From NCBI GenBank assembly GCA_964035545.1, contig OZ037766.1:12328722-12392721 (forward strand): 64,000 bases of DNA, given 5' to 3'. This DNA is from Bugula neritina. Taxonomy: Eukaryota > Animalia > Bryozoa. Both the position numbers and the translations under genes were made by a program. The notes below the pieces were generated by a model. It saw only the letters and a list, made by a program, of their open reading frames with translations. It searched no databases and had not been told where the DNA came from. Shown here in pieces: positions 16,801 through 40,800 of the stretch (positions within the stretch are counted from its first letter, which is position 1; each line of letters begins with the position of its first letter).

Positions 16801-19800
16801 AAGTTGTGCAGACATACAGTAATAAGGCTATCCTCGTCATGGACAGAGTCATGTGACTCGTCAGACTGCTGTAAGTCATGTGACTCGTCAGACTGCTGCA
16901 AGTCATGTGACTCGTCAGACTGCTGCTGAGAGTCATGTGACTCGTCAGACTGCTGTAAGTCATGTGACTCGTCAGACTGCTGTAAGTCATGTGACTGGTA
17001 TGGTTGATGCTCTGTATCCACAGCCTCTGTAGTAGATACCAACTCAGGTGAAGACTGGACAGGTGAGAGGCTAGACAATATAGCAGCATCCTTCTCAATC
17101 ACCACATCTACAACAAGTACACTTTGACTTTACACTGACAGTAACACTTCTCATATACGAGTACATACTAAATCAAGCAGCATAGTGATAGCAGTTTGAA
17201 AAAAAATTATATCTTCAAGTCAATAATATTTCCTTCAAAATTGTACATTGCCATAAGCTCGGTGCTATACAACTGTTGGGTTAGCAGCAAAAAGAAACCT
17301 TCCGCATAATTCAAGCATAACATACTTTATAATAATTTATGAGCCTAGCATATATGAATAGATGCTGGACAGATGGAAGACATATTGCAGGGCTACTGCA
17401 ATACACTGTGTGTGAAATTAGTACCTATAAACTTATATATTATCAAAATACAACAAGAAGATTATTTCAAATATTACATAGGGACATTAAAACTGCTATA
17501 GTTTATAGTCGGTCAACAGATCAGTATGTTAGCACACGCATAAGAAAGTACACTTAGCAATGTTATGCTAGTATTAACCTTTTGCTCCATCCACACCCAA
17601 TTCTTTTCTAGCAACTTCTTTTTCCTTTTCACTTGTGACAGGTTTGACAGAGTGAATACACTTTATTATCACATCATCTCGATTGATTCTTTGCAACGCC
17701 CTTTCTAAAGTATTGCCTGAAAGCATACTTTGATAATTAATATGATTTGAACACCTTTGTTAACAATTAGTCCTAGTAGCTCTAATAAATACAAAAAGTG
17801 TTTTTAATGGACTCCTTCAAAATTTAATTAAGTATTAACTCATTGAAGTGTAGTGACCTGGGCTAAGCTAGAAAATGGAAAAAGTTAACACTCATTCAGC
17901 TGTTGGATGTAATACTCTAATAAGTGTAAAGCCTGGTTACATTGTAAACAGAGGTGCAATAAGTTGGTAAGTGGCTGTAGAGATTCAACACAATACAACA
18001 ATCACCTGTAGCCAGAACACCAGCTTGTTTCATCCACAACTTCAGCATAGAAAGAGATTGTTTTTGCTCATTCTGGCCATCAGCTTGAATCCTATCCACC
18101 TCTTTGTTGCTAATATTAAGTTCTTGTGCCAGACGCGGCCAATCACTGCCCACTTCCTCAGCTATTTCTGGGAGTCTAAGATTAGCGCTGACTATATTTT
18201 CTGAGATGACTACAAAACATCATATGGTTTCATTTACTTCCAACCGACGTTTTGTTAATAAAAGTATTCATATTTTAGTTTGAAAGTCAGAGTATAAAAC
18301 TGGTTGTTGCTTCCATCGGCCCAACAAAAAAACTCGACTGAAATAACTATGGTCATACAAGGACTTAGTCGCTAAACTCACAGGAAACGCCATGATCTCG
18401 ATAGAGTCTGTATCTTTCATTGAAGTCAGCTGTTCGACTTAGATCAAGGTCAGACGCAGTTTTCTGAAATCATATTCCATATTGTTGTTATTTATATAAA
18501 TTAAATACTTTTTTTACAAATGAAAGAATGATGGAACATATACCACGTCATGCAATACCAGACTATATATTATTGCAAGTTCCCATGAATTGAAACTTTA
18601 CAGGTAAAACACAAAATATAAATATAATGCATGCATGTAAATATTCTTGTTACTACTAGGACTTACCATTCTAAATTATTTATATTGAGTTAGTAAAAGC
18701 AAGTTTCTGTACACCAATATATTATTTTAGTGTGAAAACAAAAATTTGGCAAAGCATTGAAACCCAAAATAATTATGTAGAATGTAAATTAACAATAATG
18801 GGCAGTTTGTTAAATAAATTTATTAAATAATAAGAATTACTTGGCACGCAGAGATGTTGGTACAAATACAAAACACATATGAACACCGCTCTATATTTAA
18901 ACATAGGCTTACATGGTAGAATTGTATATATGAGCATGTGTGTATATATGAAAAGGTAGATTCTTTCAATAGACAAATAGTCGGATTGTATGGCAAGTGG
19001 AAGTGGCAGCAGATATTAATTGCAAAAAGAGTCTGTGGTGGAAAAGTTAGCAGCATGTTTAATAAATTTTAAACTGCATTGCATATAATTTGTATAAGGT
19101 AATATAAAACATCCTCTAATGGCAAACTGCAATTGAATTTCTTTTCATTCCGGTATGCAGTTATTATTAAGCAATGCTGGGATGTTGACTCAGTTTATGG
19201 TTTAGACTTTAGATAGTTTTTATTATCAAAAATTCACTAACTTGTTTAGCCATAACCATCTTACAGATAATGATATAGTATTTATACTCAGAATAAATTT
19301 CTAAATAATTAGCAAGCATATATTTTAATTTTGCTGCGCCCAGATATCTTTGAGGCTCTTTAAGGTTAAAAGCAAGAAGCAAAATAATAAAATGATGGCT
19401 GCACAAAGCAATGAGGCTTAGCATTGAGGGTAAAGTTCAACATAAATCGCTTAGGTTAGTTCAGGAACCAACATTTTATTTCCGATAAACAATAATCACA
19501 GCAATAGTTTTAAGAATTTCAAATGTCACGTGTTTTCGTTTCAACAATTATCCTGAAATACAAAACATGCAGAAACGAATTAATATATCATAATTAAAAC
19601 ACTGATGACTTCAAATGAATTCTGATGTTAGTCCGGTTAGTAATGGACGAAACAAGTAATTGAAATGCTAAGTAAGCGAAATTAGTTTCTTTGACTGCAG
19701 ATCGAAGAGCAATTATCTGTTGAAACAAATTACGTCTACTTGACTAAACATGATTCTATAAAGCATGGAGACATAGCAGCTAAAGGACATAATAGCGAGA

Positions 19801-22800
19801 AATAAAAGAGGGTACAACACCAGCAAGGGTTCACCACATTAAGAAAAGTATAGAAATGCAAGACATGCTCAAATTACAACATTCCCAAGCAGCACCATAC
19901 GCTGTCAACTTACCAGGTCTTCATCATACTCAGGCAGTTTTATTTGCAGATTGCAGATGGGCATCTGAGATGGTTCGCCTTTAGCTACTTTAGGCTCCCT
20001 CATGAAAGCCACCCTTCCGGTTGGCTCTCTATCTTGGTCACGGATGCGTACAATAAAAGGGAGACGATTCTCTTGGAAAGCTTGGAATTTAATATGTAGC
20101 TGGGTATCATCAGACCGGGTTATTGGTATTAGGTTGCCAGCCATCTCCAGCCATTGTTCCTTATTCTCTAGAACCTAAACACAGTGGGAGAATTGCTAGA
20201 GCTGCCGTAACAAATTACATTTTAACATGGGCTTTGTTTTCACAAATAATATAACAAACATACAAAATAATCCCAGACCTGCTTAGTTATCATATAAATG
20301 AAAGTGAAGTTTAACATACGTGCTGAGTAAGTTTTAATTAAGTCAATAAGACAAAAAAATAAAATATTTTAAGATTAGTTCAAGAAATAATTATGCATAC
20401 AGACCCTAGCTTGAATTTCTGATTATCTCACAAGGCATACCTCGATGTCTCGGCTGCGGGCCACTTCGGTGAAATACTGTTGGGTCTCCAGAGTCTTATC
20501 AATCTTGTCATCAGTCATGCAGAAGACCCTGAGACGAGCTTCTTTCTGCTCGTGTCGCTTGGCAAACACAACAAACCGAGACACGAAAGGCACATTGCAT
20601 ATTTCTTTGTAGAGGGTGTTGGCCATAGATATAACCTCAGGCACCTGTTGGTAGTCCACTAGCCAGAATCTAAAGCACAGAGTGGAGCCTCACAATGCAC
20701 ACATTCTCTAATTAATCACTGAAGCAATCAATGTATAAACAGCTGCTGCATTTCGTTCTGGTATGTAGAATAAACTTGACTGTGCTACTATTTTTCCAAA
20801 CATCCTATAGGCAAGAGTAATAAGTTAGCTACCACCATTAATTTTTAATAGAACTCGTCAGGAGAACTGATTTTCAATGAACCTCTTGATTATATAAACT
20901 CATACAGCACAGAACCTGAAAGGAAAAAATTGTTGAAACAAATTTCGCAAAGTCAAGCATGCTAGCTAGCCTAAACTTACCTGGCAGAAAAGTTGGTGGT
21001 AAAGGAGACGCAGTCATTTACAAACTTGAGAGTCGTGCTATCAGTTACATCCTTCCATTCAGCAGGGTTTTCTCCGTCTATAAAAACAAATACAAAATAA
21101 GGTAGGAAAATATGACATGCCAATCAACATTGTATCTTGAACCATAAAACATTCTATACCAAAAATCAAAGGGGAAAAATAGCAAAGAAACAAGGTTCAT
21201 GATAGAAATCCTCACAAACACATAGATATAATATAGTACACATGAATGTTGTATTTTGAAAGCTTCAAGACTGTCTTAAAAACTAACAAAACATGAATTA
21301 TATAAATGAGCCCGATTTTTATGTTAAGCTTGTGCATATTTCCATGAAATGGATAACAAAATCACATTCCAGCATGTTCTATATACTTGAGCTCACATTA
21401 TACATAACTTATACATGTATATATAAGCTAAATTACTATAGTGTCGATGAGTTGTGCACAGCCATAACAAACTGATCAGATGATAGATATAGATTATAGA
21501 TGATAGAGATATAGAGCAGCACATCACCTGCCATACTGGAGAGCAATCGAAGGGTAGCTGAACGCTGAGTGTACTGATTCGTCATCCCTTTGGTGGCAGC
21601 TTTGGGCAGAGGGAAGGTCAACGTGATCTGTTTACGAAATTGTCTCCTCCTTGGTTCTACTGTCACTACAGGGCTAACAGCCGCTCGGTTGCCATATAAT
21701 CTAGCCACAATGTCGGCCGGCACGGGATGTGCCTACAGCAGTCAACAAGAGCAAACTCTGTGACAAAGAGACAAATCTGTGATATCGGTTACAGAAACAC
21801 AACAAAATTAAAAACAAGACTTTTAAAAAATATAGAAAACTGAAGTTTTATGCTTGTAAATTTCTCTTGTAATCACCTGTAATCCAATCTTGGTGGGCTT
21901 CTTCAGAGCACCGGCAGGGAACACAGCCTGTGCTTGAGGAACCACAGTTGAGCTAATGATAGCTCCTTCAGGCCCAACCATACTAGTTTCAATTTTCACT
22001 CTAGAAACTAAGGCAAAGTACTTGGGGAACTGTGTAGTCACGATTCTAGTAATTCTCTTCTTGGCCAGTTCATCCAAAGGTTCAATGTCTGACAAGTACA
22101 ACATGCATAATAGATTTGCTTTACATTATTATTTTCTTGTGGCATTAAATATAAGCTCAACATCTTAGCATTCTCATATGGGGAAAAATAATGCATTTAT
22201 AAAGTTGTTATTTAAAGTGCAAGAAGCATGTAGTTTCATATTTCTGAGCAGATAGTCTTTTACTATCAACTTCTAAAGATACCAGATATCTTCTCAATAG
22301 CTGCCCCATAGGCTGCTGCAATGACTGAATATTGAAGCATTTTGATACTGATGAGCAGTTTGCATTGCTAAATCTCTGAAGATATCAAAGCCGGGAGATA
22401 GGCCAAGCACATGATTAATATTTCCACTATATGCTAACATGTCATATGATATAACATTCACTCGTCTCTTGACTGTAGGCTGCTTGTATAAAACCATTTT
22501 AAAGGCAACTTTGCATATCAGCATGCATCAAGCACAGCTCGGGTTTTGACGATAGCCAAAGCAAAACTTATTTAATAGCAAAGATGGTTCATATAACAGA
22601 AAGTCGAGTCAGAATCCAGTCAAGTCAATCAATGACTTAAATTAACTCAAGTCAGGTAAAATGGACTTGCAAGTTCTTGATCACGTTAATTTATGTAACT
22701 TTCATTGTAGTAGCATTAAAATTATGGTTACTTGATGAAATAATGTTGAATAGATTTTATCAAAACACTGCTAAATCACAGATATTTTTAACAAAGTTAC

Positions 22801-25800
22801 CTGTACCTTTCTAGAAGCGCTAAAAACTACTCAAACTTCAAATACTTGCAAAAGTTGTCAACCGATTAAAACTTTCAAGTCAAACCGATAATTCCAGCAA
22901 ATTACTGAGTTAGCATGAGTCAGAACAGGTCTGTTTATTAGTATAAGCTGAAGTCTCTTATGACCATGTTATCCTATACTGAGCAATACTGCTGTCAGTT
23001 CAGCTTACATACGAAGGCAGCAGCGCCATTTGCAATGAATAATCCAACTAAACTCACCAGGAAAATTTTCTTGATGACCTGCCAGGCAAGTTACAGATTT
23101 TACTTGATATTTACAGTAAAAGATAGAGTGACAACAGCTCAATAGTGTCAACAAGAAAAATTAAGCTTCAACGTCCCTATTTAGTACATACCATCAAAGC
23201 TGTTATTCACAGCTTTGAGCACAAGGTCATCGGTTGGTTTGACCTTGTGCTCCTCCCACCGCCGTCCATCCTGACTCTTTAAAACTAGAACTTCTCTATC
23301 TTCTTGGAGGGAAGCAAAGTGGGGCACCTCGATTATTACCGGACTACAAATGATAACACCAAGTTTTACTACAAACAAAATATATTTTTAGCATACAATA
23401 TTCTTAAACAGAGATATGGGAAGTTTATAAATACAAATGATGAAGTACTATAAATGAAAATAACTATTTTAAGTTACTTCCCGTGAACCTGAATGGTGAA
23501 TGAGTGGATTAAAACTTACCCCAGAAACGAAGTACCAGCTGGCCCCAAACTCACAATTCGAGAAGCCAGTGCCTCTCCATCACAGAGAGAGGGTGGTACT
23601 GGTAGCTTCTCCTTCTTAACCAGCCGGCACGTGATCCTGGTCGGTCCGGTAGCCATACCAGGTGGTATGACAATCCTGACCCCAGCATGACGGCAACCTC
23701 GCATGGCCCCACCACGAGCGTCCACCATGAAGCTGACGAGGAAGCTGAAATATGATACACATATAACATAAGAGAGTCAAGTAACAACTTGTGATTGTAC
23801 AAAAGAATAAAGCTTGTCTTACAGTAATAATACAGCCACTAGTTTGAGCTAAATGACTACAGTGTGAACAGCTGAGAGGCATTGATAAGCTGTTGGCACC
23901 AAATACAGCTGCTTCTGCAATTCACAGAATTTTGAACAGCATGCAAATTTAAAAAAATTCAAAACGTTTAAAAACGCTAGAAAAATATTTATATAAGCAG
24001 CAGTTTTGCTGATAAAGATATTATGCTTAAATTGAAGCATTGCGAGGGAAGGATTGTTAGCAATATTCAAGGTTTTTAATAGTTCTAAAGAGCATAAATA
24101 AGGTAATAATGTAACACGACATATGTATCTATATAAAGCACAGTATCTAAAATTTATTACTAATTAAACTTGTATATTACAACAACTACAAAACAAATAA
24201 AATAAAACTAAGCAACAATGAACGACAATCTAAACTGTAACATCCTTTACAACATTTCAGTATCAATACCTTTTCCATTGGAGTTTATCACTAAAAATAA
24301 ATAGGAAAACCCTAATTGAAATACAACAAATTTACAAATTATATGTTATTAAACTCTCTTTGAACATACATGCAAGTACCGAAGCTCAGACAACCAAGGA
24401 ATAGAAACGCATCATATTTACTCAAGTTCATATTTCATATGAAAAATAAATCCACATGCAGTTTGGTGTATATACTCAACGTACCCAGTAAAGACAGGGT
24501 TTCTATCTACAACTACGTTGTCGGGGTTAAAGTCTCTCCCGAAATCAGTTCCACTGTAAGAAGCCTCAATAGTTCTTCCTCTTTTTAATGTAAACACACT
24601 CCAGGGCATTAAACCTGAATGAATAAAACACAGTAACCCTATCAGAATAATATTTATATTTAGGTTTAGCTTGGAAGATATGGAAGAATACTTTTACAGT
24701 GCACAGTCCATAAATCAAGGAACTAATCTTGACTATTTCAGATGAAATAAAAGAGCTGTGACTTTTCTATATTATGATAACAAACTAAACAATTTCAGCT
24801 TGAGAGAAGTGGATAAACCTACAAAATATCAACAATATTCCAAAAAGCTTAAAGCATTATCTTCTATGTAAAGGGAGTTTGGAGGCAGGAGATTCACAAA
24901 CAAATAGGCAGAGTATTTACAAAGTAATGACAATACTGAGATTGGATACTTTCTTTTTATTAGGTAATCATGTCATCGATGCAAATCAGATACAAAAGTC
25001 AGCAAGAATAACAGGTTTGAGAGGTACATTCAGAATGCAGCAAACACAACTTACCAGGAGGTAGGGTGCTAGGAAGAGGGGGTGGAGATGTTGGAGATCC
25101 CTTGTCAGAATATGCACCTCGAACACCGACATTGGCTGATTGCGCTACAACATATATATTTAGTCCTCAGAGTATTCAGTCACACGACTTTACTTCAACC
25201 AAAATCATGTACAAATTAACAACAAACTTTTAATGTTACACATTTATAGTTATAATTCACAAAGATGGCTTCAGCCACCTCAAATTTATAAACACAAACA
25301 TACCTGTCTCAGCAACCTCTTGTCCTATGATCTCTTCAATGATTTCAGGTCTCTGTACTTTCTGCAGAGGTGGGGCGGGTGAGCTGTGTACCGAACTACC
25401 TTGTGGAACTCTCACAACCTATATATAAGCAAGTGTCAAGATAGAGATTGTGATAAACTATGTTTGAAAAAAAGATGCAGAGTGAAACCACACAATTTTG
25501 TAGAACTTTATAAGCATCTACCTCTCCTTTGGGGTCCACTACAGCTTTGCCATCTGGACCAACCAGAGCACATTCTCCAGCAGGAAGTAGAACCACCGCT
25601 CCATTTACATCACTAGCATACTGTCCATCAGGCAAGACTAAGTGCCCATCAGCTCCAGCCTCCATAATCTTAGTACCTAGAAAATGAGGAAATTAGACAT
25701 GTCCTGAAGTCTTGGAATACAACTAAAAATGCCTGAGACAAATTTACATTGACAAAAATATTACCGCCAGATTAATTTAATTATCAGATATAATTTATCT

Positions 25801-28800
25801 AAAGGACTCACAATGGTAATTAAATGACTCTTTTTAAAAAGAAATTTCCTACTTGAAAAGCGATAGACTAGTAAAGTTATTTTAAAAAATCAGTTCTATA
25901 CTGACACACACCTGGTGTAACTTGAAGAGGAAGTCCATTTTCCTCTAAAACAGGGTCGCCAGCACTGTCCACCACAACTTCATGTTGTACAGGTGTTATT
26001 CTGGAGCCTCTGGGCACCGGCACAGGGCGGCCCCGTGGAGAATTAACAATTTGTCCAGCTGGAGAGACTAGTAAGAGACTGCGAGGAGCTGCTACTACTG
26101 GTTTACCTGTGTATAACCGCATATGGATATTGTATAACAACTCATGTGATATAGAGTAGTACTACACAAAACTCTGTATTATAATGCAAACCTCAAGTAT
26201 TATAACTTAACCAACAGTACCCTAACATAACACAATAGCCTACACACCGTATTTATCCGTCACTGGGACGTTGTCGGCTCCAGTAACACTGCCATCATCT
26301 GCTACTTCTAGAATCTGCGTGCCAGGTTTCACTGTGAGTGGATGACCTTGACTGTCCTTCACGGGATTGCCGTCAACGTCACGCAGGAAATTTTCACCGG
26401 GAGCCATAATAACACTTCCTGGAAACAGCAAATACTTGAAAGCTGCCAGTACCACACTTCGTTACAAGAACGAAAACAAAAAGGAATATTCCTCACCTTC
26501 AGGAACAAAGACTGGCTGAGTATTTTTATAGCAGACAGGTTTATCGTCAGGTCCAACAACAACTTCTTGACCTGCTGGAATCTTCAATGGGAACTGAGTT
26601 TTATCCAACAATTTTCCTGCTGAAATATGAAATGTGCAGATATAGTAATAATAGCTAAACTATTGGTGAATAGAGCAATCAACACTAGCGTATCAACTTT
26701 TCTGGTTTCTCAAACTGATGAGCTACAAAACACAAACTCAGTGTACATGAAATTGCAATTCTACAAATTTAAAGATAAAATTATGTAAGAAAAACTACAG
26801 CACACTTAATAGAATTTGCAGAAAATATACCTTGGCCTACAGTAGCATAGCCATCACTGTCACCTGTGAGCAGCCTGGTGCCTGGTGTCACCCAAACAGG
26901 CTGCGAGTTGTCATCTTCAACTACTGTCTTATCAGGACATACTATATAAAGGAGTTGACCAGGTTGGGCTATGTTCACACCTGCAAGCAGTGTAGGTTAG
27001 GATTCAGTATATATCTTCAAGGGAATGTGAAATCAATACAAACATGATTTCTCAGACCAGTGTCAGAAAAAAATCTAAGCATGTAAGTAAAATTTTGAAA
27101 TAAAATGCTATATAATCAAATTGTATAGACAGCTTCTACTTTTATTTTTTCTTAAGACCAGCAGTTTTTAGACCTAATGAAAAACCAATGCTTTACCTGG
27201 TTTAGTAACAACTGGCTGTCCTCTAGCATCAAGAATTGGCTGCAATGATTCAGCATCAACAAGAACTTCCTGTTCGGGAGCTGTAATGATTGGACGACCA
27301 ACCGAGTCGCACAGCTTACTGCCATCTGGAAGTTGTATCTTGCCAGTATCATCAGCCTGAAAAATTTCCAGGCAAAAAGTGAAACAAACAACAATAAACT
27401 GACGTATCATATTTTACCGGAATAGTCTATTTAACAGCACTTATTGATCTTGAAATTAATATTAATCCAAAGCTAAACAGTTGAGGTGTATAAAATCTTA
27501 GTTGCTTTTAAATAAGCATTCTTTTGAGCTTCTCAGCAGGTAACCTATGAGAGCCTCAATCCCTGCGTGAACCCCTGATGGTAAGAGGTAGGTGCAGTCA
27601 CAGCGAAATTGGGAACAGCTTATGTTCTGGATGTAAAATGGAGCAAAGAAAGTTATATTCTGGTGAGAATTTCAGCCTGAGGTCTAAACGAAAATTTGTT
27701 AAAGAAAATTAAAGAACTTGGGTCATTGAAATTTCTCCACTATTGCACCCAAATGAATGGTGAAGAGTTATGCAAATTGCTCCAGGGTAGAACTATAACA
27801 GTAATATAACATAGTGTAGACATACTTGTAGAATAATTGTGTCATTATTAACTGTTATAGAGCGGCCTTTGTGGTCAGCTACAGGGTGGCCTTCATTATC
27901 CAGAACGTACTTCTGTCTGGGAGCAATCACCACACTTCCTGCTGGAACCACCACCACGGCGCCATCTGGAAGAAAACCAAAAGTGAGTGAGAGCTTTTGT
28001 ATAAGACCAGCAAGTCAAACACTTATTAATAAATAATATAGAAAAAGTAACATAAAGCAAAAAGCTCTTCATAAAGAAGTGAGCAGTTAGTGTACTATAA
28101 ACTGATTTGTTACATATAAATTGCAATTAAACATCAATGACTGCGCGGTGAGAGCATCTGAGTATATTAGTAAGATAGATCAGGGAGCAGCCGTGGTCTG
28201 GGCGTTACAGCACTGGCTCAATAATCAATAAACAGAAAGTCAGTGGTTCAATCCCAAATAAAGGCAATTGGTGATGTTACGCAGAGCATCCGGTCATAAT
28301 TACTCCTTAGCCACAATAGTGAAGCACTTAACCTGCTTAAAAAAGCCCTTTCCATCAGGGTTTCTCACAGAGATGGCGACTATGAACCCAGTGAGTGAGC
28401 TTATCAGTGAAGTAAATAGTGCTGAGTAGATTTAAACTATGGCCACATGACTAACCTTTGTCTATGACAGGGTGGTAATCAGGACCAACAGCTATAACAG
28501 TCCCAGGAGTGTGTTTAAAGACCTTGCCATCTGCAGAGGTCAGCTTAGATCCGTCAGGTAGATACACAAAGTTATCTGATGCAACAGTCAGCAATGAAGA
28601 GCCTATAATATGGCAGCATTAACGTCAAAATCAAACTGTGTCCAACAAACATGCCTAACAGAAGAATAAAAAATAAATCAACATTCTTATGTTGGATGAG
28701 TGCAACCATTAAATAGAGATTGGTAAAATTAGTTGTTGGCTTGTAGTAGGTCACACAGCAACATCAACTCACGTCAATGCTTAAACCACTCCCTGTTCAA

Positions 28801-31800
28801 CATGTATATTCAGTATGAAATTAACACCTCAATTAGCCGCTTGTGTTTTTAAATATCTGCTTGATTTGATACATGAACAAATGATTTGGTTGCTGGATAT
28901 ATTACTAATTTATACTTGCAGAATCTGGCAAATACACCTGTTTGAGTCAAATGTGAACAATAATTATCAGTGTTGGTGACATCAGTTATTCAACTCAGTA
29001 ATGGCACATTGATGGCACGATAAAGTATGAAACTGGTTAACCATAAGCATTTGTATTTATGTACCTACGGACAGTTCTTATATTAAAACTAGTACTAATA
29101 TTGTGTGCATAGTGTAAGTAAGTGGTGCAGTATGTAGCAAGTCCAACACCATATGTGATGAAACCACTCACCTTGATCAACGCCGAGTGGTACTCCTTTT
29201 TCATTAGTGATGGCCTTGCCATCTGGCCCAAGAATGGCCTCCTCCTGTCCAGGAATAGTGAGCTTACTCCCTCCAGGCACGGTTATGACTCTAAAGAAAC
29301 ATTTAGCTTATATGTTATTGCAAATTATACGCGAAAACTGCACTTGGATCTAATACAATTTGACATAAAATCAGAAATCATAATTCAGACAAGTATTCAG
29401 AAATGATGTGTGGCAAAAAAGGTAGGGCAATTTATTAACTATCAACTTTTGAAAACCTAACATTTTGAAAACATATACTAGAAGCAGCAACAGTTTAACG
29501 CAGTTCCAAAAATTTGTGAACTCAAGCCGACTTCGTATTGGTAGGCAACATGAAATATGACCTTTACTTGTATAAAAATGTCACTACAATAGTATAGACT
29601 AAGTTTCTTACTTTCCATTCTTATCTGTTAGGGGGGTGTCTTCAGGTCCCAGTATAACTTTGCACACATTTGGGAGAATCTGTATCTGCCTTCCTTGTTT
29701 GTCGAGCACTGGTTCTCCAGTTGCACTGAAAACATAGCCTTGGCTATCCGGGACTACCACTTGACTTCCCACCGGCACTCTCAGGGCCTTACTGTCCTTA
29801 TCTGAACCAGAAGGAAAAGCATTGCGCATTGCAACAGCTGATGGCGAGAAACTTTAATTTGTCTAATAAATGTCACAAAATGTAGCATCCTAGGGGTTGC
29901 CATTAGAATGATCTTGTCAAACCACCCAATAGTACAGCTGTGTGGTAAAAATGCTGGTAAAGTGGTTATAAATACAATGAATAGCTGTGAACCAACATAA
30001 CGTGACATGACCTTGACATCAATTTGAAAAAGAAAACTGAAACCATAGCTAGACAAATAGCTGATATATGTAAAATCATAACTAAAAAGATGTACCAACA
30101 ACCTGCTATAAGAAACACATGTATACATGTACTCTGACATCATAATACAAAAATTGAACTAATTTTTTGTAACGACAGATATGTGTAAATGAGGCAAAAC
30201 AGACATCAGTTACATTCGCTAATCAGACAATCTCCTACCCCTCAACAGATATTGATTGAACTTACTTCTTCTGCGTGAATTTAGTACCTTTACTAAATAA
30301 AAAAGGCAATTTTCTATTACAGAAAGAAGAAAATAAAATAAATGTGGATATAAATTAAAAGCTATTTGATCGAAATCACACTGAAAGTTGAATTGAAGAT
30401 TTATCAAGAAGAAACCTACTTTTTAGCAATTTATTTCCTGGCACGACTATTACAGGCTCTTTTCCACCATCAACTTTTACTGACTTTCCATCTGCGGTGT
30501 GGATCCTCTTACCATCAAGCCCCTTAATCTTCCCGTCTTTTCCAGGGGTAACAACTTGAGACCCTGGGGCTACACGAACAAACTGTCCATCTCTGTCCAT
30601 AACTGCGTAAAAACACATTATTTACAATAATTATACACACAAAAATACAATACAGTACAGGTTTGAGGAAATCATCACGATTTTGTATCTATCCTATCAA
30701 ACTTTGCTGTACATGTATAGCACATATCAAGATATTTCAGACGATCAAGATTCCTGGATATGAGGTACTACTAGAACATATTATGTAACATATGAAGGAC
30801 GGCAGGTTGTAAACTAAGAAATCAGAAGAAGCAATGAGACATGCCAGATCACCTATGAGACTCAACCGTAGATGGCCGAGTTCAGGTGACACAACATTGT
30901 GTTAGACTCAGATTTCTACAGTGGCTGGAATAGCATGCAGCCGTCACCAGCGAAGAACAGATTTAGCCTTATCTTGCAATTTGATGACATAAAAACTTTA
31001 GAGAGAACATCTCTATCACTGTGAGCAATACAACTGTGCCTACTGCCAGCTACAGAATGTTTATCTTTCATTTAAAGAAAACTCTTAAAAGAAGAATTAT
31101 TTTTTTAAGAAAATGTAAACATACTAAATATTATTATCAACTAAAAAGATAGAAGTCAAGCAGCATTAGGTTATTAATTAATATTGGAATTCAACAAGAT
31201 TATAGCATCATGCAGAATATAAGTTCAGGTATAATAAATGTAGCTGCCATGGCTATATAAAACCCAAAGTTCACATATATCATGTGCATAGACAGACATG
31301 TAGGAAATATGTGCAAACTCTAGTTGTACTGGAATTTTGCAGCTGTATTTAATTTATCAAACAGAGACATGAATACCATTCCTCATATCAAAATAAACAT
31401 GTAATGCAGAGAAATGTAAATAAAGTTTATGAAGAGAGCATGTGTACACTACCTGATTTCCACAGAGCACGCTTTTTCTTCCCTAGTTAATTAAATAGTT
31501 ATAGTCAACAACTTTCTTGAAAAAGACATTGGGCTATATTATAATACGTGTTATGGTAGATTGTAATTATCCATAGTAAAAAATGGTGTTGAGACAGAGT
31601 GGGTATATATCACATATTTGGTTATGGTATCACAGTTACCTAGATTGAAGTCAGGGGAGACAACATATGCTGCTGATTCAGGGTTAACCTTGGTATTACT
31701 TCCATTAACCAACACCTCACTTCCGTCAGGCTTGACAAGACGACCTACAAATCAGAATCATTTATTAGAAATTCTTCAACTGAGTAGAGCAGCTTTATAA

Positions 31801-34800
31801 GGTTGAGGTCATATCAAAAGCTGACACAGGAATGTTGACTGAACTTTCATCTTGACAGCATTTTTTAAATAGTGAGCTAGAGGTAAACTCTGTATAAGTT
31901 GTAGGACAGGTTCAGCACCAGATTTAACCAGTTTAACAACTCCTAATCATTAGAGAAGGCAAGGGGCCAACCTAAACTTAATATTTATACATGCAATCAC
32001 TGGTTGTATAAAGTATACAAGAATTGATTAGGGCGTATAAAGCCAGTCCCTGCTTTTCATTGGTAGAATTGCACTAGCTATGAAACTATCCTAACATCAT
32101 ACAACACCATAAAACAATTAATGTGTAAACTGTTGTCTAATACAACACTAAGATGGTGGTTTGTCTAGCATCAGATGGTTGTTATGTTATCTTATAACAC
32201 TGCAAGGGCTGTGACACATTCTTAACCAAACAAATATGATAGTCAGCCCTGCTCCATAATAGGTAGATGACAGCACTAATGTACTTACAGCTCTATAATA
32301 TGTAATAAAGTAATTCATAAAACATATACAGGATGTCAAACAAAGCATCACAGAGTGTCTTCTCTATATACTTAAAGTCTAAAATTTCATTGAGGTCAAT
32401 TGTAGACGTGCACAGCTATGAGCTCAAGTGCAAGATAAAACTGAGATAGTTGCATCTCTTTGCTTTCCTACGACTCAACAAAAGAGTTACATATAGAAAA
32501 TGAACACTTACCATCAGAGTGGGGAATAAGCAATGTGCTGCCAGACAGTACCAGAATTGGTTTGGAGTCAGCACCAAGAACAGGTAGGCCATGCTTGTCC
32601 ACCACCACCTGCTGCATTGGTGGCACCTTGATGGCTTTACCATCGGGTCCGAGGATCTGGATAATAGAAAAAAAGCTTTATAAATTGCCAAAAAAAATTC
32701 TACTAGTTAGAAGAAGGAAAGAAATTACTGCAAGACAAGATACATGCACTACACATGTACTTTATTGGACTTTTTCCAACATTCGAAGCCTATGCACCCA
32801 CCATGTAAATATTTAAAGTAGCCGTCAGTTTCAGCAGACATAAACACACTACCTTAGACTTCCAGGTAACTCAATGCAGTAGAATCACCCACCTTTTTCT
32901 TATCTGCACCGTGCAGTGTACCATCATCACCAGCAGAGGCAAAGTGGCTAGAAGCAGGGACACGCACAATCTTTCCCTGAGCAGTCGTAACAACCTCCTG
33001 GTTGGGGGAGAGAATAACTGCTGCACAGAACTTGTCCACAACTTTCACAGGTTTCATAGAGTCATCTATAGAAAACACATCTTATATACATATATAGTGT
33101 TTTAGGGCTTCAAAGATTCTGCATCATGTTGATTAAAACGATAATATATTCTAACCCTGAAGATGAATAGAGAGGTATTTGAAGTATCAGTTTGCCATAT
33201 CCTTGTATAAATAAAGTAATGATAAAATGTTTCTCATTTATCTATTTCTGATAATATATTCAATATTAGGTTATCTGTATTAGTACTGTTTGCAAAGCTA
33301 ATTGATGAGCAGAATGACAGTATGGACAACATGGCAATAATATAGTTACGGTGCGTTACTCACCAGTTACAATTACACCAGCAGAGTTAGTTACTGTTCT
33401 GTCAACATTTGGATACACCAGTTTACTACCAGCAGGCACACACACTGGCTCATCATCTTCTCCGATCACTGGTCTGCCATTAGCAAACACTATGTAGTTC
33501 TGTAGACCTACAAATTATATCCGCATGTATTACAAAAACTCAGACAGGCATTGCTGGTTTTCATTACTGAATTTAAATTAAATTATGTTCCTCCCACTAA
33601 AAAATTCATTTATATTTAAAAACAAATAATGCTTGGAAAGGCACTTCAACCACTTAGCTGCTACAACAAACCACATAACCAATGTCATTGAGTTTCAAGC
33701 TAAGTATTTCACAAGAAGCCATGGAAGTGTAAAGTTACGAAAAGATGGCGATAATTTTTTAATAAAATCAAGTCTCGTTGAAATGAATTTATCCAGCTTG
33801 TCGCTAGTACCTCACAGCTTGTATATGAAAAGTTGTCAATAGCTAATGTTAATCTCATTTCCTATTAATTTTATGTCTAAGTAGCTTACCTGGAGCAATA
33901 AGCACACTGCCACCAACTACCGTAACCGGTTTACCAACCAGGTTCACAGTCTTCATATCAGGTCCCACAACTACAAGGACATCTGGGGCCGCGTGTCTCA
34001 AGACTGCAGCTTTGCCAGTGTCAGCGTCAATAACTTGCTTGTCATTTACCTGCAGGCAGATTATTGCATTGCTAGTGTTCAGGTACACCCAGTATCAGTG
34101 TTCATTAATAGAAGTGCTAATATATGTACAGGGATTACTCAAAATCGCTTCAACTGAGAAAAACATTACAGGAAGGCAACCCAAGCAATCATGGCAGACC
34201 TAATTATAGCAATAAATCAATAAACATTTAGTATGTCAGTTATAGCATAACCTAGAGCAATCTGAGAAAGAAGACCTACAAATAATAGCTACGCTTGATA
34301 AAAATTTTGTAAAGTAGATTCACTTGTAAAGTGTCACTAACATTACAATATGCTTCACCTACATTGGAATTATTATGATATGATGTAATACAGGAAGCAG
34401 TTTACCTTGATCCTTCCATCTTTCAACGGGGTAACGAGCTGTGTTCCAGCCTCAACAACTAAAGGATTCCTCTTGTCATCTAGCGTGAGTTTGCCAGAAG
34501 GCTCCAGAATGATTTTGTTACCACTGGGTTTCACTCGGATGATGTTACCTTCGGCATCTGTGTAGGGTTTGTGGTCAGGGCCATAGATGGTGCCATCTGC
34601 AGCAAGAGAGTATAGAGAGTGCTTGTCGTGAACGAGCACTATCGGCTTCCTGTCGGCTCCGTGTAACACCTTTCCATCTGGACCAATCACTTCTCCTGAA
34701 AGATGGCAGAAAGGCAGAGACACATGAAAATCACATGCGTGATTACAATATTGTTCTACAAATCAAATCAGAACTTCACATCATAATTTCTTGACCTAAG

Positions 34801-37800
34801 TATTGCAAAGCCTTGGAGTCTTCCTAAAAACTAAGGGTATCGAGACATTGTTATGGAACATTATGTGGAATTCTTTTCAACACAGCATAATCTTACAGAA
34901 AGTGACAGTATTCATGCAGCCAGCCACAGACATTAGAGACAGTAGGGTCATACAATAGACAAGTCAGTACCTGAGGTGGTCAGCACATATCCCGTCTCAG
35001 AGCCGCTGTCCTCCATGTACTGGGGAGCAGCTTCAGTAGCCGTAACAGTCTCTGGTGTTGTATATATATCGTACATCCCGGGGTCTTCACCTTTAGGTGG
35101 GATAAACACTCCCCCAACAGGCTCGTCATTCTTCTACAAACACAAAACAGTTGAAAGTTAATTAAACCGATCACTTAACTACAGTTAGAGACTCTGTCAA
35201 AACCTAACTATTCACTTACTTGCACATGAGTTGGTGCTGATGATTGTAATATCCTTTCCTTTACTTGGAAACTGCCATTACGGCTAACTTTTCTCTTTAG
35301 AGAAGAAAGCATTCTTTAATTTTTTAGAAAAAATTATGAAACCATGTTGAAATTTCAACTCATAATTTCAAATAGCAAATCTAAACTGCATGAAGCTAAG
35401 ATTCATGTATAACTTTGTCAATGAGTGTAACTAGTGTTTTCTGCAGCATTAAAAATGACGTAGAGCTTGCTTCACAGATCTGCCAACTACTTTATGGAAG
35501 TAAGAGACTAGAATATGTTCATATACAAAAAAGAATTAATATCTATTGCAAAAATTTTTGCTAGCTGTGAAATGATGCAAATGCTAAAGATGCTTATTCT
35601 TACATTGAGTAAATAAAATAAATTTAATTATTGTAGAAATAGTAATTTCCTGCTCAAAAACTACTACACTGTAGTAATTGGTCTATAAAATCTAAAGGAA
35701 AAAAGTTTAGCATATGGCAGGTCTGCTCAAATGGGAAAAGTGTCAGTGCTACTTTGACCTCTACAAATATTCCAACTACCTGGGAAAAATGCTCTCTAAA
35801 TGTTTATGTACTTTGTAAATATTTGTTGGCAGCTTTTAAACATGTCAAGCGATGCCGACTCATAATATGTGTGTAGACAACTCCTAAATGTACACAAGAT
35901 TAGTTACCCCATAATCCTGTCAGAATTATCAGGAGAAGAAATTCATAATCAAAGGTCAGAGTGAGTTGGGGATAGAAAGGCAAGATTGCCAGTTCTAACA
36001 TAAAGGTCTGAAAATGTCAGTAGGTCTTGGATACAACAAGGTATGTTTAATGAATAGGACGAAGGAAACAGACTGTTAATGCTAGCAACAAGAGAAATTT
36101 TCATACATCAAACTATTTTCTTTCAATCAAGTTCAGAAAATAAATTCTAACAGTTTTTATCTTGACTTTAAAAAAATTAAGATTAAAGTAGCAGACGTGG
36201 CCAAAAAGTCAATCGTGGTGAGAAATAGTCAAGAACGTTCTTAAAATCTTAAAACTGTGTTGAATAATTACAATTACTGTAGTGGGATGCTAAAAGTAAA
36301 ACCTACTTCAATAACTGCCAACTACAACTATTTTATTTGTAAATCCTCTGTATTTTGCAAGCTTTATTGCTGTCAATGTTAAGCAGAAAAATTACTATTC
36401 ATGAGAGGAGTGGTGAAACATTTAAATTTAATTTTGAGATAATCAATTTCAACGTGAAATTGCAATATCTGAAGGAAGCTTTTAATGTTATTTCAATGAT
36501 CACCATAGTGAAAATATGCAAGAATGAATCCGGTAGAAATGCAAAAATATCAAAACCACAAAATTAACATTAAAAATCTACATGAGTAGAATAAAATAAC
36601 CAAAAAAATTGCCTGATGAACTTTGACAGAGTTTTATAGTACCTATGGTATGTGCATGTGCTCGAAATGCTAAAAATTGCTATGTAACACTATTATAGAC
36701 ATACACTAGAAAAGTGTAACACTTTAGAGGCCAATGGGATAATAATAGAGCAAATTTTGCATATTTAGTTCTTTGTACTATTATTAGAGAAATATATTAG
36801 CCAAGAACTGTGCTGAGTGTAAACTACATAATGTGATCTATTTATAAAACAAAGGTAGAAAAACAAATTACACATAAAAAAAACATAATGTGAATGAAGA
36901 GAGTATTGGAGAAGTTAGTATGTTATTGGTTGAGGTACTGCAGAGTGGTTTGGAATACACATTTACACTTCACTGACCTTGTAAACTAAGTATAACAAAG
37001 CCTACCAAGTATATTATATATGGCAATTACACATGAGTACTAAATTTAAGACATCAACCCCATATGTGTACGAGTGTAATTATTATAGTCTGACCATGTA
37101 CAAATATACGCAACAATGACAGAAATAGGAAAAACATATACTACCTAACCACCTTTGCATGCATGTTTGAAAATGTTTAATGATTGCGAAAAATGTATTC
37201 TATCATTATGATGTTATCACGTTTTACTCATTTAGGAGCAGTAGCCTAGTGGAGAAATTGAGATAGCCTAACTACCGTTACTCACATCCTTTACCATTTA
37301 TAAAACAGCACCGAAGCCAGCAGAACAACAAACATCAGTAGCAGCTGCCAACATCAACACAACAACAATTTCAGCAATGAAGAAAGTATAGACATAGAAA
37401 GAGGAAGATATGTGGCACACAAACCTCATCTGGAGGAGCGGAGTCATCAGGAAGCTGAGTCTTCCAAAGCTCAGTTTCATACAAATTATCGATTTGACCA
37501 TCACCAGCGAGTTCGATGGAATGTGTGGGAATATTACTAGATAGCAGCTGTTGTTCCTATAAGCGACAACATTACTACATACATAGTGAGGCAACAACCA
37601 GCAGTGATAGCGTGTTACAACAATAAGCATGTGCATTAGATGAGCCACATTCATTACATTTCATTGTTTCATAGCAATAAGATCATAGAAGTCTTTTAAG
37701 GAGAGAAAAACTCCCAACATTACATGTTTACTCCTTAAAATGAGTTGAAAGGAAATTTATCGAAACATCTTTTGAGATTTTAGCAGTCAATAATGTATAC

Positions 37801-40800
37801 CAAAATAGATTTATTTGCAATTTTCATTTATCTTCGGAATTCTTTACATTAATAAATAATTATGGAAAATCGATTACCCAACAAAATTAAAAATAATAAA
37901 TTTTTCGTATTAATAATCTTTTTAAACATAGTGGTAACAGAAATTGAGCTGGATAATACAACGAAAAGTTAAGTTTTAATAAATAGATGCTGCATTCCAC
38001 ATACTCAGCTAGGAAAAGAAAAACAAAACAAAGCACGAAGGCAGCAAAAAATACTCTCAGCATGTGTGTAGATAAAGTAGAAACAAAATATTGGAGAGTT
38101 TCACAACACAGCTATTAGTAATGTGAAGGATAAGACTCAGCATGAGACTTATCTTCACCAACACTCACCTCTATAAATTGATCATTTCTATCTAAACTAT
38201 CATCAAAGTCTCCGGGGAAATTTCCCATATGACCAACATGCTTACCACCCTGTACAAAGCACCATATAGAAAAAGCATAGTTTAAAATTATAAAAAAAAC
38301 ACAAAATATAAAGCTATAAAGGCATAAATATTTTTACAACAATCAAATATGGAAAGCCTTGCACATGCATGGAGCTATTAGTACAATGTTATTATAAATT
38401 AAGAAATCAGGAATCATGGGATCAAATGAAAACAACCAAAGACTAAGCAACAGTTGACAGAGTTGAAAACTTCAGACTATTTGAATTAATACCAAAGAAT
38501 TTGTTAGGGCTTTGGGGTCCAGCTACATATGTTCATATATTCTGATGTGATAGCACATTTGCTTTATTATTTGGACCAATCTATCATTTTCATATTATAC
38601 TCTCTCCCACCTTTGGAGTTGGGCTCTCCGCACTTTCCTCTGCTACGAGTTTTAAAGAATCCGATTCAGTTTGGTAGACTGGGTTTTGCTGTTTGGTAAC
38701 AGCAGCATGGTGCATTCTAGCAGCCGCGACTGGTGCTGAGATATCAATGTCAACTGTCTCATTAACCTCTAGAGAAGGAGTTATGTGAGTATCAGGAGAG
38801 CTTGTGTCCTCGCGTCTCTTGTGATACTTTCGCTGAGACGGAGATGGTGGAATTTGGTGTTCACTACCAGTGCTCTTGGGTGGTGATTCCACAACCTTGC
38901 TTCGACTAGGAGCTATTGGCGCTGTATCCAATGATGACGTATCCATAGCTGGTGAGTCAGGTGAAAATGGAACAGAGCGAGTTTTAGGATTAGTTTCTTG
39001 GCAGACCGATTCGGAAGCATCCTGAGGAATGAGGCTGGGTGAGTGGCTGACGTCAACTCCTGCAGGTCTCAGCGAAGTAGGCTGATATGAACAATAAAAT
39101 GGCGCATCTTCAGCCAATTCAGTAGTCAAATTGCCAGGTTGAAGACGCTGTGATGGTTTTGGCTGTAATAATTGTGAAGACTGGTCTACAGCTTTGGGTT
39201 TGATTGAATCTTCCCCTTCAGGTGATACTGAGTGAGGAGCTGACGTAGATTGTTGACCTGTACCGGGTTCAGGCTGAGTGGATTCTGTATATACGTGGTC
39301 CGCATCATATCTAGCATCAATATCACCAGCATTACTACGTTCAGACGGCACTGGGTGAAAAGCTGAAGCAGAAAACTGCTCTGCAGCGAGTTCAATGCTA
39401 GAGTCATTCCTTCTACTACGATCAGACGCAACTGGGCGAAAGGATGATGCACCCGACTTATCAATAATGCTACTACGCTCAGATGGCAGTGGATGAGACG
39501 ATGGTGTAGAGGTATCATCAGTAGTCGGTACATCACCGGATCCATTCTGTCCAGCTGCTTTTACAGATGGAACATGCAACTGCTCACCAGTTTCCATAGA
39601 CTGCGTCTTGGGCTGAGCTTCTACCACTGAACCAGCACCTCCCGGTGATTGAAGTGGCAGATTCTGATAATCAGCAGTGACAGTTGGAAGAATTTCTTCC
39701 ACTTCCATAGCTTGAGGAATATTTTTTATGGAGCGTTTGCTTGCCCGGGGTGGACTGCTGCGGTAGCTTGTTGGTGGCAAAGATTGTTCATCGGGGTGAT
39801 CTGATATTGTGTCAACGGGTCTTTGTCTAGATGGAATATTCTGATAAGGAGACATGGCGGATATAGAGATTTCCTCATATGGGATTCCTTCAATAGAAGC
39901 TATACTGTCACCGTCGCCTCTCTTTACTGGGGTTGCTGGAGTAGTATCTCTGGGGAGACCTCGCTTTCGGGGGCTTGGTGAAGATTTTGAAACTTTTGAA
40001 ATTGAGGAAATGGAGGCTTGACTGCGAGTTCTGGGAACTGGTGCTTGCCGAGCAGAGGCGGACATTTGCGGGTGATGATGCGACTCCTGGTAGGCGTGAG
40101 GGTAATCAAGAGACTCAACAGAATACGAGGGAAAAGCACCGCTTTGCTAAAGGTGATACAGAACAAAGGCTAGTTATACAACACATAATAGCAACAAATC
40201 TAATGTTAACAGAAACCGTGCGGAAAGCATCAAGCGAGTAAGTAAAGGCTACTACACACAACACCAACTATTAGACAACTAAACTGTGCATATAAGTGTG
40301 CAGCACTTGAAATAAAATACCATTGAAAGCTCAGGTGAAGCAGGATCTAAGATCTCATCATACTGCTGTGAAGGTAAAGCAAACTGCTCTCTGTTAGAAG
40401 GCTGCGGGGAAGAAGGACTGTCTATTTCCCACGGAGCAGCATTCTTTGTTGGACTACCGGTGGCAGTGTTACTAACAGACAAGCGTGGCGCCACCACCAA
40501 AGGGGTAGCAGCATAGCTTGTCAAAGACTCGCTATGAGCAAGAATTCCCTGTGTGAGAAATATATTAGTACATGCGGTAGCAGCGGAGTTAAGGAAGCAG
40601 CACCCACAGGTAATGTTTAAAGCAACAGTAAGCAATCATAGTACAAGCAGAGAGTTTCATAGCATTACAGAATAAATTTAATTCTTCACAAAACATTAAA
40701 TTTTAGAAATGAAAACCATAAATTTATCATGCAAGAGAATGTTGAGTAACAATAGCTCAGAAACCAAAGTGAAAATAAATATTAAAAATTAGTCTAACTT

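Follow-up and report, generated by a model that had tools for sequence, protein, structure and literature searches.

Introduction

What is the block of beta-hairpin repeats that lies between the ANK repeats and the ZU5 domain of an ankyrin gene of Bugula neritina, and what might it do there? Animals ranging from placozoans and cnidarians up to mammals are reported to share the core ankyrin layout (PMC5135030); the linker of AnkB is an autoinhibitory peptide of about 113 aa (PMC3663501, PMC5779224). The block was analysed in a window of 64,000 nucleotides (contig OZ037766.1, 12,328,722 to 12,392,721), and all coordinates below are positions in that window. A preliminary description had proposed a folded, elongated, all-beta module of 2,838 nt and 946 aa, encoded by 18 GT-AG exons in one frame and inserted between the ANK repeats and ZU5.

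Results

The host gene

The host gene is a canonical, giant-type ankyrin. It has 24 ANK repeats, counted from exon translations and also matched by Pfam Ank, along with the ZU5-ZU5-UPA and death domains, in common with AnkR/B/G, Drosophila Ank2 and UNC-44 (PMC5135030). As in protostome giant ankyrins, a giant exon is predicted after the death domain: from window position 7986 outwards, its frame runs for at least 5,969 codons without a stop. ZU5, UPA and Death were assigned using the window exons and Pfam calls on the collinear loci L039 and L045. The public model of this ankyrin omits ANK15-22. The features outside the module are as follows.

43411..52639, minus strand: ANK-repeat exons, 24 repeats
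43590-43411, minus strand: last ANK exon, ANK24 and an AI-c-like tail
34971..42456, minus strand: upstream low-complexity linker, eight predicted exons (about 42456-42364, 41722-41648, 41210-41115, 40548-40321, 40146-38611, 38249-38169, 37556-37425 and 35133-34971)
25055..25144, minus strand: Pro/Ser-rich linker exon, 90 nt, RNA joints; kept in L012, L013, L019 and L039
24485..24614, minus strand: conserved pre-ZU5 linker exon, 130 nt, RNA joints
24270..24290, minus strand: optional micro-exon before ZU5, 21 nt, present in two RNA runs
17920..23744, minus strand: exons for ZU5-ZU5-UPA and the death domain, the first ZU5 exon (23744-23519) being joined to the module in RNA

The eight upstream linker exons were located by mapping the public model P0159, and their phases are compatible. 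In the public model they encode about 780-820 aa, rich in Ser/Glu/Pro/Gln, between ANK24 and module exon 1, and the last two have orthologues at loci L014/L015. The 3′ half of the pre-ZU5 exon is 50-58% like the mollusc ankyrin linker, and both linker ends of canonical ankyrins are kept in the Bugula protein.

Exon structure and splicing of the module

The module consists of 18 minus-strand exons from 34695 to 25304, with AG acceptors and GT donors and a single stop-free frame (percentages below refer to orthologues).

34406..34695, minus strand: exon 1, 290 nt, phase 1-0; 79%
33890..34049, minus strand: exon 2, 160 nt; 70%
33364..33507, minus strand: exon 3, 144 nt; 80%
32893..33065, minus strand: exon 4, 173 nt; 60%
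32512..32656, minus strand: exon 5, 145 nt; 52%
31640..31744, minus strand: exon 6, 105 nt; 53%
31453..31482, minus strand: candidate AG-GT micro-exon, 30 nt, 10 basic residues; in the public model
30420..30602, minus strand: exon 7, 183 nt; 75-77%
29612..29801, minus strand: exon 8, 190 nt, 3′ end spliced to exon 9 in each of the four RNA runs; 57-76%
29172..29290, minus strand: exon 9, 119 nt, RNA joint; 85-87%
28456..28602, minus strand: exon 10, 147 nt, acceptor from RNA; orthologues span all 48 codons
27826..27965, minus strand: exon 11, 140 nt, RNA joints; 72-76%
27197..27356, minus strand: exon 12, 160 nt, RNA joints; 68-70%
26831..26980, minus strand: exon 13, 150 nt, RNA joints; 63-75%
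26497..26619, minus strand: exon 14, 123 nt, RNA joints; 69-77%
26248..26418, minus strand: exon 15, 171 nt, RNA joints; 57-63%
25912..26106, minus strand: exon 16, 195 nt, RNA joints; 66-73%
25522..25676, minus strand: exon 17, 155 nt, RNA joints; five distinct orthologues, 45-57%
25304..25418, minus strand: exon 18, 115 nt, repeats end, then low-complexity linker, RNA joints; 50-64%

The 18 exons in one frame were thus as first described, whereas the size was not: after two RNA-based corrections the module measures 2,865 nt and 955 aa. RNA places the acceptor of exon 10 at 28602, 27 nt more 5′ than in the initial model (28575), and bears out that of exon 14 at 26619. Low-complexity linker already makes up the final ~25-30 residues of exon 18, so that the repeat block itself comprises ~930 aa. 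At intron composition, a run of 955 codons without a stop would arise by chance with a probability of ~1e-29. The public model A0A7J7KFH7 includes the block without annotating it. A further candidate exon at 28379-28333, which sits in a high-copy interspersed repeat, was skipped in RNA and was rejected.

The joints from exon 8 to exon 18 and on to the ZU5 exon were all present in RNA contigs from four studies, demonstrating expression, and in three runs contigs extended without a break from the ZU5 exon into the module. The module belongs to the ankyrin gene, and in mRNA it is spliced to ZU5. The proposed insertion between the ANK repeats and ZU5 is supported on the ZU5 side; on the ANK side the block and the repeats are not adjacent, eight predicted linker exons lying between them. 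The ANK-to-module connection rests on exon phases and the public gene model, from which we infer that both lie in the same chain.

The module might instead form the N-terminal domain of an ANK-less isoform (module-ZU5-UPA-DD) transcribed from an internal promoter, with full-length ankyrin skipping it. Vertebrate ankyrins have ANK-less isoforms, the module phase of 1-1 permits skipping in frame, and a 5,425-nt contig stops, according to exon-length arithmetic, ~360 nt beyond the 5′ end of module exon 1. However, contigs, which drop rare forms, are unbroken at both acceptors where skipping would branch, the upstream exons are all phase-compatible and joined in an independent public model, and upstream linker exons are collinear in another species, making this isoform an improbable explanation.

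Comparison with other ankyrins

In 120 other ankyrins from vertebrates, arthropods and molluscs, the distance from ANK24 to ZU5 was 124-321 aa, and the hairpin repeat was absent from all of their linkers, in line with the preliminary view that the module was new to ankyrins. The Bugula linker comprises at least ~1,030 aa (the module and two exons joined in RNA) and up to ~1,850 aa, and the Bugula ankyrin thus departs from the canonical short linker of 100-300 aa.

Repeat architecture

The module can be divided into 31 hairpin units with an 8-residue period, which fall into three types (12 A-B pairs, six C units and one partial unit), and its sequence periodicity peaks at 8, 25, 33, 41, 58 and 90 residues (z 6-11). 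It is rich in V (14.6%), G (10.7%), P (9.5%) and D (8.4%), with 3% aromatics, and order-promoting residues make up a fraction of 0.34, compared with 0.23 in the linker that flanks it. Compared with 2,000 shuffles, the turn motifs DxxG (19 vs 8.5) and PxG[ST] (10 vs 1.0) were in excess. Literal [GA]PDG occurs only four times, so the original label of a 'GPDG repeat' was overstated. The units share 25-35% identity with each other, no tandem repeat was found in the module at the DNA level, and introns fall at scattered offsets inside the units, confirming that the units are highly diverged and that introns ignore their boundaries. The B. neritina genome yielded no further copy of the block; six other genomic matches of the repeat profiles, when opened, were minisatellites or low-complexity stretches and not donor genes.

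Orthologues and constraint

Each of the 18 module exons has collinear, in-register orthologues in no fewer than five further species, probably bryozoans, with 67% identity, and the unit order appears frozen between species. In-register exons showed pS of 0.65-0.87 versus pN of 0.07-0.35, except exon 18 in L019/L020 (pS 0.46). At the level of coding sequence, these values demonstrate purifying selection on the module with saturated synonymous sites, and the module is old, as had been supposed. Gly (87%), Pro (85%) and Asp (82%) were the best-kept residues, Arg was kept at 74%, compared with 50% for Ser, 45% for Ala and 35% for His, and 88% of hydrophobic positions remained hydrophobic, a pattern suggestive of fold-level constraint.

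The block may possibly act mainly as a new binding or self-assembly platform for a new partner, with exposed beta edges that, as in the CPAP TCP domain, would bind peptides or further copies of the block, and with spacing as a secondary effect, though we consider this doubtful. Units are 67% identical to their own orthologue versus 25-35% to their neighbours, and positions are therefore individually fixed; exons 1, 3, 7 and 9 reach 75-87%, Arg is kept at 74%, and the profile weakly resembles CPAP (E 0.03). On the other hand, most polar surface residues vary freely, aromatics are few, and CPAP gave no structural match (Foldseek E 0.1, TM 0.09).

Predicted structure and family searches

AlphaFold predicted an essentially all-beta structure with a repeating bridge pattern for the C-terminal 213 residues (pLDDT 81.7, pTM 0.49), from an input alignment of distant repeats, mostly bacterial and protist, that may bias the model. 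Weak structural matches fall separately on residues 31-124 and 127-208, and the C-terminal module apparently forms ~90-aa lobes. The all-beta part of the original proposal is thus predicted with confidence for these 213 residues, whereas an elongated shape is not (pTM 0.49, two ~90-aa lobes). The 743-aa model reached a pLDDT of 44, which could indicate that the N-terminal part is only loosely folded or that the block arose as an expansion that is mostly neutral and tolerated. Its input alignment was, however, noisy (1,946 columns), and the N-terminal exons contain the same unit types and show the highest conservation (70-80%), their synonymous sites being saturated; either reading is very unlikely.

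Pfam gave nothing at cut-off exon by exon, with unit alignment A1 or with the entire block. No convincing match was obtained by PDB sequence search, Foldseek against PDB and BFVD, VIA or the Atlas by shape, no usable match by searching the ESM Atlas by features, and neither the insert nor the repeat type was found described in the literature. Several co-matches contain families of the Beta-flower (PF21784-6), DUF3659, DUF6799, CPAP/Tcp10_C and FlgF D1 types, which have DxxG-type hairpin tips as in the Bugula module. Each was rejected. Beta-flower, a symmetric 8-12-strand barrel with an aromatic core (PMC10584680), had no Pfam match (PF21784/5/6), is at odds with 3% aromatics, and the Atlas row with these families had TM 0.30. 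DUF6799 scored 16.5 bits versus a gathering score of 26.8, and DUF3659 had no Pfam match. The TCP domain of CPAP/SAS-4 (Tcp10_C), a single-layer beta-sheet, scored 13.9 of 36 bits on exon 1 (Foldseek TM 0.09-0.10). The FlgF/FlgG rod D1 domain, absent from the VIA matches, gave only matches to a ~40-residue hairpin motif (FlgF: NCBIfam E 1e-11, summed over repeats; PDB E 4e-4). NHL-propeller matches of the repeat profile were gappy DG-motif matches.

Similar repeats in other proteins

A word-indexed homologue search returned P0006 as its sole match, and repeating the search from there gave nothing more. The closest non-orthologous matches are uncharacterised protist giant ARM proteins (P0006, P0064; metagenome ERZ746982), with E 1e-45 and 24% identity across 98% of the module's length. 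Their repeats, inserted in a helical-repeat scaffold, have a unit opening and turn motifs like those of Bugula, but differ in a regular 34/68 period and one long exon; the likeness may reflect homology or convergence. DotG/IcmE/TraO-like TrbI and other bacterial envelope proteins share the 8-residue hairpin period, and the Bugula A, B and C unit profiles scored up to 26 bits on these bacterial repeats versus <2 on shuffles. DotG-like repeats lie between an N-terminal anchor and the TrbI domain, between two functional ends, at the place where Legionella DotG has a stalk of repeats; unlike the hairpin repeats, that stalk is a predicted beta-helix (bioRxiv 10.1101/312009). The bacterial repeats differ in being periplasmic or surface-located, with units of 24-32 or 79 residues that are often near-identical copies. 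Horizontal transfer of the block from bacteria was considered; the resemblance is one of motifs, the Bugula block is interrupted by 17 introns, and trees of such short repeats would not be reliable.

Protein 4.1 of Physella acuta, auto-named 'mesocentin-like' (XP_059167298.1, P0010), is likewise an adaptor of the spectrin skeleton, and its variable middle contains ~1,070 aa of 8-period hairpin-type repeats. These repeats differ in being aromatic and Lys/Asp-rich with 21/29 periods, do not exceed 12 bits against the Bugula unit profiles and were not found in the Bugula genome; the two blocks are probably of separate origin. Judged by sequence likeness, the hairpin repeat type is not exclusive to the bryozoan ankyrin, similar repeats occurring in bacterial, protist and snail proteins. 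A resemblance to nematode DIG-1 (mesocentin) was raised initially. No search returned a DIG-1 sequence, and none of the 18 long matches inspected was DIG-1-like; the auto-name 'mesocentin-like' of the snail protein lends the resemblance indirect support. The central region of DIG-1 is described only as poorly conserved, its function not known (PMC8544517).

Discussion

Considering these results, we propose that the block is a folded all-beta insert in the middle of the ANK-ZU5 linker and most likely a semi-rigid spacer (probability about 0.55). In the proposed scenario, an 8-residue hairpin element (two hydrophobics, an Asp-x-x-Gly turn, then Pro-hydrophobic) would group into 25-34-residue units, which may pack as a chain of compact ~60-90-residue lobes. 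This chain would hold the spectrin-binding ZU5-ZU5-UPA far from the membrane-binding ANK solenoid, and neither the autoinhibitory tail next to the ANK repeats nor the pre-ZU5 segment would be disturbed by its insertion.

By analogy, DotG-like and protist ARM repeats, which likewise sit between functional parts, would favour a spacer. Against it, the ~800 flexible upstream residues would already decouple both ends, weakening the need for rigidity; a frozen unit order would not be required of a pure length spacer; and the overall shape is weakly modelled for both the 213-aa and the 743-aa segments.

A wider and more tentative proposal, which we hold to be rather unlikely, is that the block represents, for the first time in the animal cytoskeleton, a superfamily of beta-hairpin repeats that has yet to be described and whose fold the PDB does not contain. 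Such repeats would serve as a molecular stalk in bacterial secretion machines, in protist ARM giants and, independently, in two lophotrochozoan spectrin adaptors (bryozoan ankyrin and snail protein 4.1), where they would set the distance between membrane and spectrin lattice.

The reach of these findings is limited to one animal lineage so far, in which the function is one that we infer. The block provides an example, predicted to fold well, of a repeat type without a Pfam family or solved structure, and a natural construct for asking whether linker length and stiffness matter in ankyrin function. That a lineage keeps a ~930-residue folded domain in the linker would mean that the binding of membrane and of spectrin can take place at a great physical distance from each other.

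Results

The block of beta-hairpin repeats in the Bugula neritina ankyrin gene comprises 18 minus-strand exons, each bounded by an AG acceptor and a GT donor, which once spliced form a single stop-free frame, as the preliminary description had proposed. The chance probability of 955 stop-free codons is about 1e-29, and G+C content is 48% in the block exons versus 33% in the introns. The features of the window considered here are as follows.

34695-25304, minus strand: the 18 exons of the block
28150-28440: interspersed repeat in intron 10 of the block
38611-40146: 1.5-kb Ser/Pro/Glu-rich exon of the upstream linker
44260-46414: exons for ANK15-22
13371-15437: second repetitive frame, 689 codons
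1-7986, minus strand: part of a giant open frame that also covers G000:C2:12318800-12328721

RNA contigs from four studies were compared with positions 23600-29590 (exon 9 to the first ZU5 exon); three of the four runs were typed as RNA by the tool's guess, and their contigs cover exons and skip GT-AG introns. The contigs show every joint along exons 9-18 and on, by way of both short linker exons, to the first exon of ZU5, and a loose contig end matches the 3' end of exon 8. With the acceptors of exons 10 and 14 placed by the RNA at 28602 and 26619, the block measures 2,865 nt and 955 aa, a small correction to the earlier 2,838 nt and ~946 aa. The repeat in intron 10 (about 205 bp; 2,011 genome candidates at 74-81% identity) is highly represented in RNA, shows A-box- and B-box-like motifs by eye and is possibly a tRNA-derived SINE.

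The match to exon 1 led to a cluster containing KAF6036985.1/A0A7J7KFH7 (EB796_004707, named 'Ankyrin-3'), whose residues 1358-2322 match the block at 97.5% identity and draw on its 18 exons and on an additional micro-exon of 30 nt. This public model leaves out the ANK15-22 exons and stops within the first ZU5 region, and is therefore an incomplete annotation of the ankyrin gene. The gene encodes 24 ANK repeats, ZU5-ZU5-UPA and a death domain. Downstream of these lies a giant frame, at least 5,969 codons long (end not reached) and rich in Glu, Pro, Gln and Thr and in tandem repeats, which is the giant exon of a giant ankyrin of the protostome type. The block does lie between the ANK repeats and ZU5, within the linker, but the preliminary description omitted eight exons of low complexity, compatible in phase and amounting to ~800 aa in the public model, that separate it from ANK24. 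One of them, at 38611-40146, is 86% identical between window and public model versus 97.5% for the module, and is a fast-evolving, probably disordered segment. The post-ANK24 segment and the pre-ZU5 exon are similar to the opposite ends of the linker in molluscs; the new material thus occupies the variable middle.

A 5,425-nt RNA contig runs from past ZU5 into the module and, by exon-length arithmetic, would take in the whole 18-exon block and about 360 nt more, without ANK exons. Such a transcript would suit an ANK-less isoform as the owner of the block; given the phase-compatible exons leading from ANK24 to the block, we regard that assignment as improbable.

Periodicity peaks lie at 8, 25, 33, 41, 58 and 90 residues. 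With borders drawn by eye, 31 units follow in the order partial C, two A-B pairs, C, five A-B pairs and five C-A-B triplets (A, 32-34 aa; B, 24-27; C, 32-34), which gives order to the 57-60-aa long and ~32-aa short units first noticed. Leave-one-out profiles recovered the own type for 23 of 30 units, identity inside a type being 25-35%. The repeats are built on a hairpin of eight residues whose turn is of DxxG type; literal GPDG/APDG occurs at four places only. No DNA-level repeat remains in the block, and introns fall at scattered offsets within units.

When a profile built from eight pieces of one exon each (alignment A1) was run against a set of 1.84 billion proteins, it retrieved single-exon orthologues on metagenome contigs whose exons, order and splice positions are those of the Bugula neritina block. 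One contig, L039, carries exons 10-18, both linker exons, ZU5, ZU5, UPA and the death domain, and L014 carries exons 1-3 with the preceding linker exon; an orthologue was found for every one of the 18 exons, and for exon 17 there are five different ones. Over 1,718 positions 67% of residues are identical, the share being 82-87% for Gly, Pro and Asp; synonymous sites have reached saturation or nearly so, and pN is 0.07-0.35 (in-register rows only). This collinearity and saturation bear out the proposed old age. In a tree of 103 columns without brachiopods or annelids, contigs L013 and L019 form a group with Bugula at 100/99 to which molluscs, arthropods and vertebrates do not belong. Records of L039 and L042 are labelled BRYA16, which presumably stands for the work of Bryant et al. 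2016 on plastic debris; in that study 30-90% of eukaryotic rRNA reads came from bryozoans (PMC5069773). The other orthologue-bearing species are likely bryozoan.

Across a set of 120 vertebrate, arthropod and mollusc ankyrins, in which many entries are isoforms from the same fish genes, the ANK-ZU5 distance is 124-321 aa and the repeat profiles scored in none, in agreement with the claimed absence from known ankyrins. No second copy was found in the Bugula neritina genome, and the block was absent from two ANK-ZU5 paralogues on contig C4. Across 0.66 Mb of that contig (G000:C4:12414034-13076771) a ZU5-like exon recurs about 20 times, at 54-59% identity to the ZU5 exon of the ankyrin gene; in the two copies inspected, four ANK exons lie 2 kb upstream and the hairpin block is missing. 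The array resembles a tandem family of ankyrin paralogues that have been truncated and have diverged. Just past the high end of the window, upstream of the ankyrin gene (G000:C2:12394546-12410639), are weak ZU5-like fragments of 28-59 aa at 43-57% identity, some of them interrupted by stops.

Discussion

The block stayed below the Pfam and NCBIfam cut-offs throughout. Whole-block searches and folding used the public protein, and the window sequence was searched exon by exon; the repeat analysis used the spliced exons. The best non-orthologous match was a protist giant ARM protein (24% over 98% of the block, E 1e-45); two paralogous giant ARM-repeat proteins from a short-intron protist (L017:10001-18262, L018:10001-18439) each hold ~1,270 aa of 34/68-period hairpin repeats amid helical repeats. 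Further matches were DotG/TraO-like TrbI proteins, an OmpA/PorE-like protein and actinobacterial proteins. Many DotG/IcmE/TraO-like TrbI proteins, among them P0018, P0047, P0116, P0035, P0071 and P0002, one being from Teredinibacter purpureus, carry 900-2,000 aa of hairpin repeats, in the same place as the predicted beta-helix stalk of Legionella DotG. Protein 4.1 of Physella acuta (XP_059167298.1; FERM-FA to 4.1 CTD), whose automatic name 'mesocentin-like' is a misnomer, has ~1,070 aa of 8-period hairpin-type repeats at residues 461-1533 and is a second spectrin-skeleton adaptor with such an insert. The 8-residue period is common to all, whereas the higher-order unit differs; common origin with the block is possible but not established, because E-values for such repeats are inflated. 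A 24-nt minisatellite (L024:3892-4500, contig C5) reads in one frame as an 8-residue unit that has three hydrophobics and a turn of Thr-Asp-Gly-Asn; this illustrates how simple DNA repeats could give rise afresh to a hairpin-like repeat of period 8.

The preliminary observation is thus confirmed with small corrections, and its interpretation is partly supported. We favour, at a probability of roughly 0.55, a chain of folded beta-hairpin lobes that serves as a semi-rigid spacer between membrane binding and spectrin binding. Conservation in the block is centred on turn and core residues, and in unrelated proteins like repeats are placed between functional ends. If lined up, ten lobes, each about 3 nm, would span ~25-30 nm, a rough figure from typical domain size. 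A new binding or self-assembly platform is a possible though less favoured role, and a loosely folded expansion appears the least probable reading. No papers on the insert were found, and its sequence stands unannotated in public databases. The host is a canonical giant ankyrin carrying an undescribed, conserved, probably folded insert, which would separate the membrane-binding part from the spectrin-binding part.
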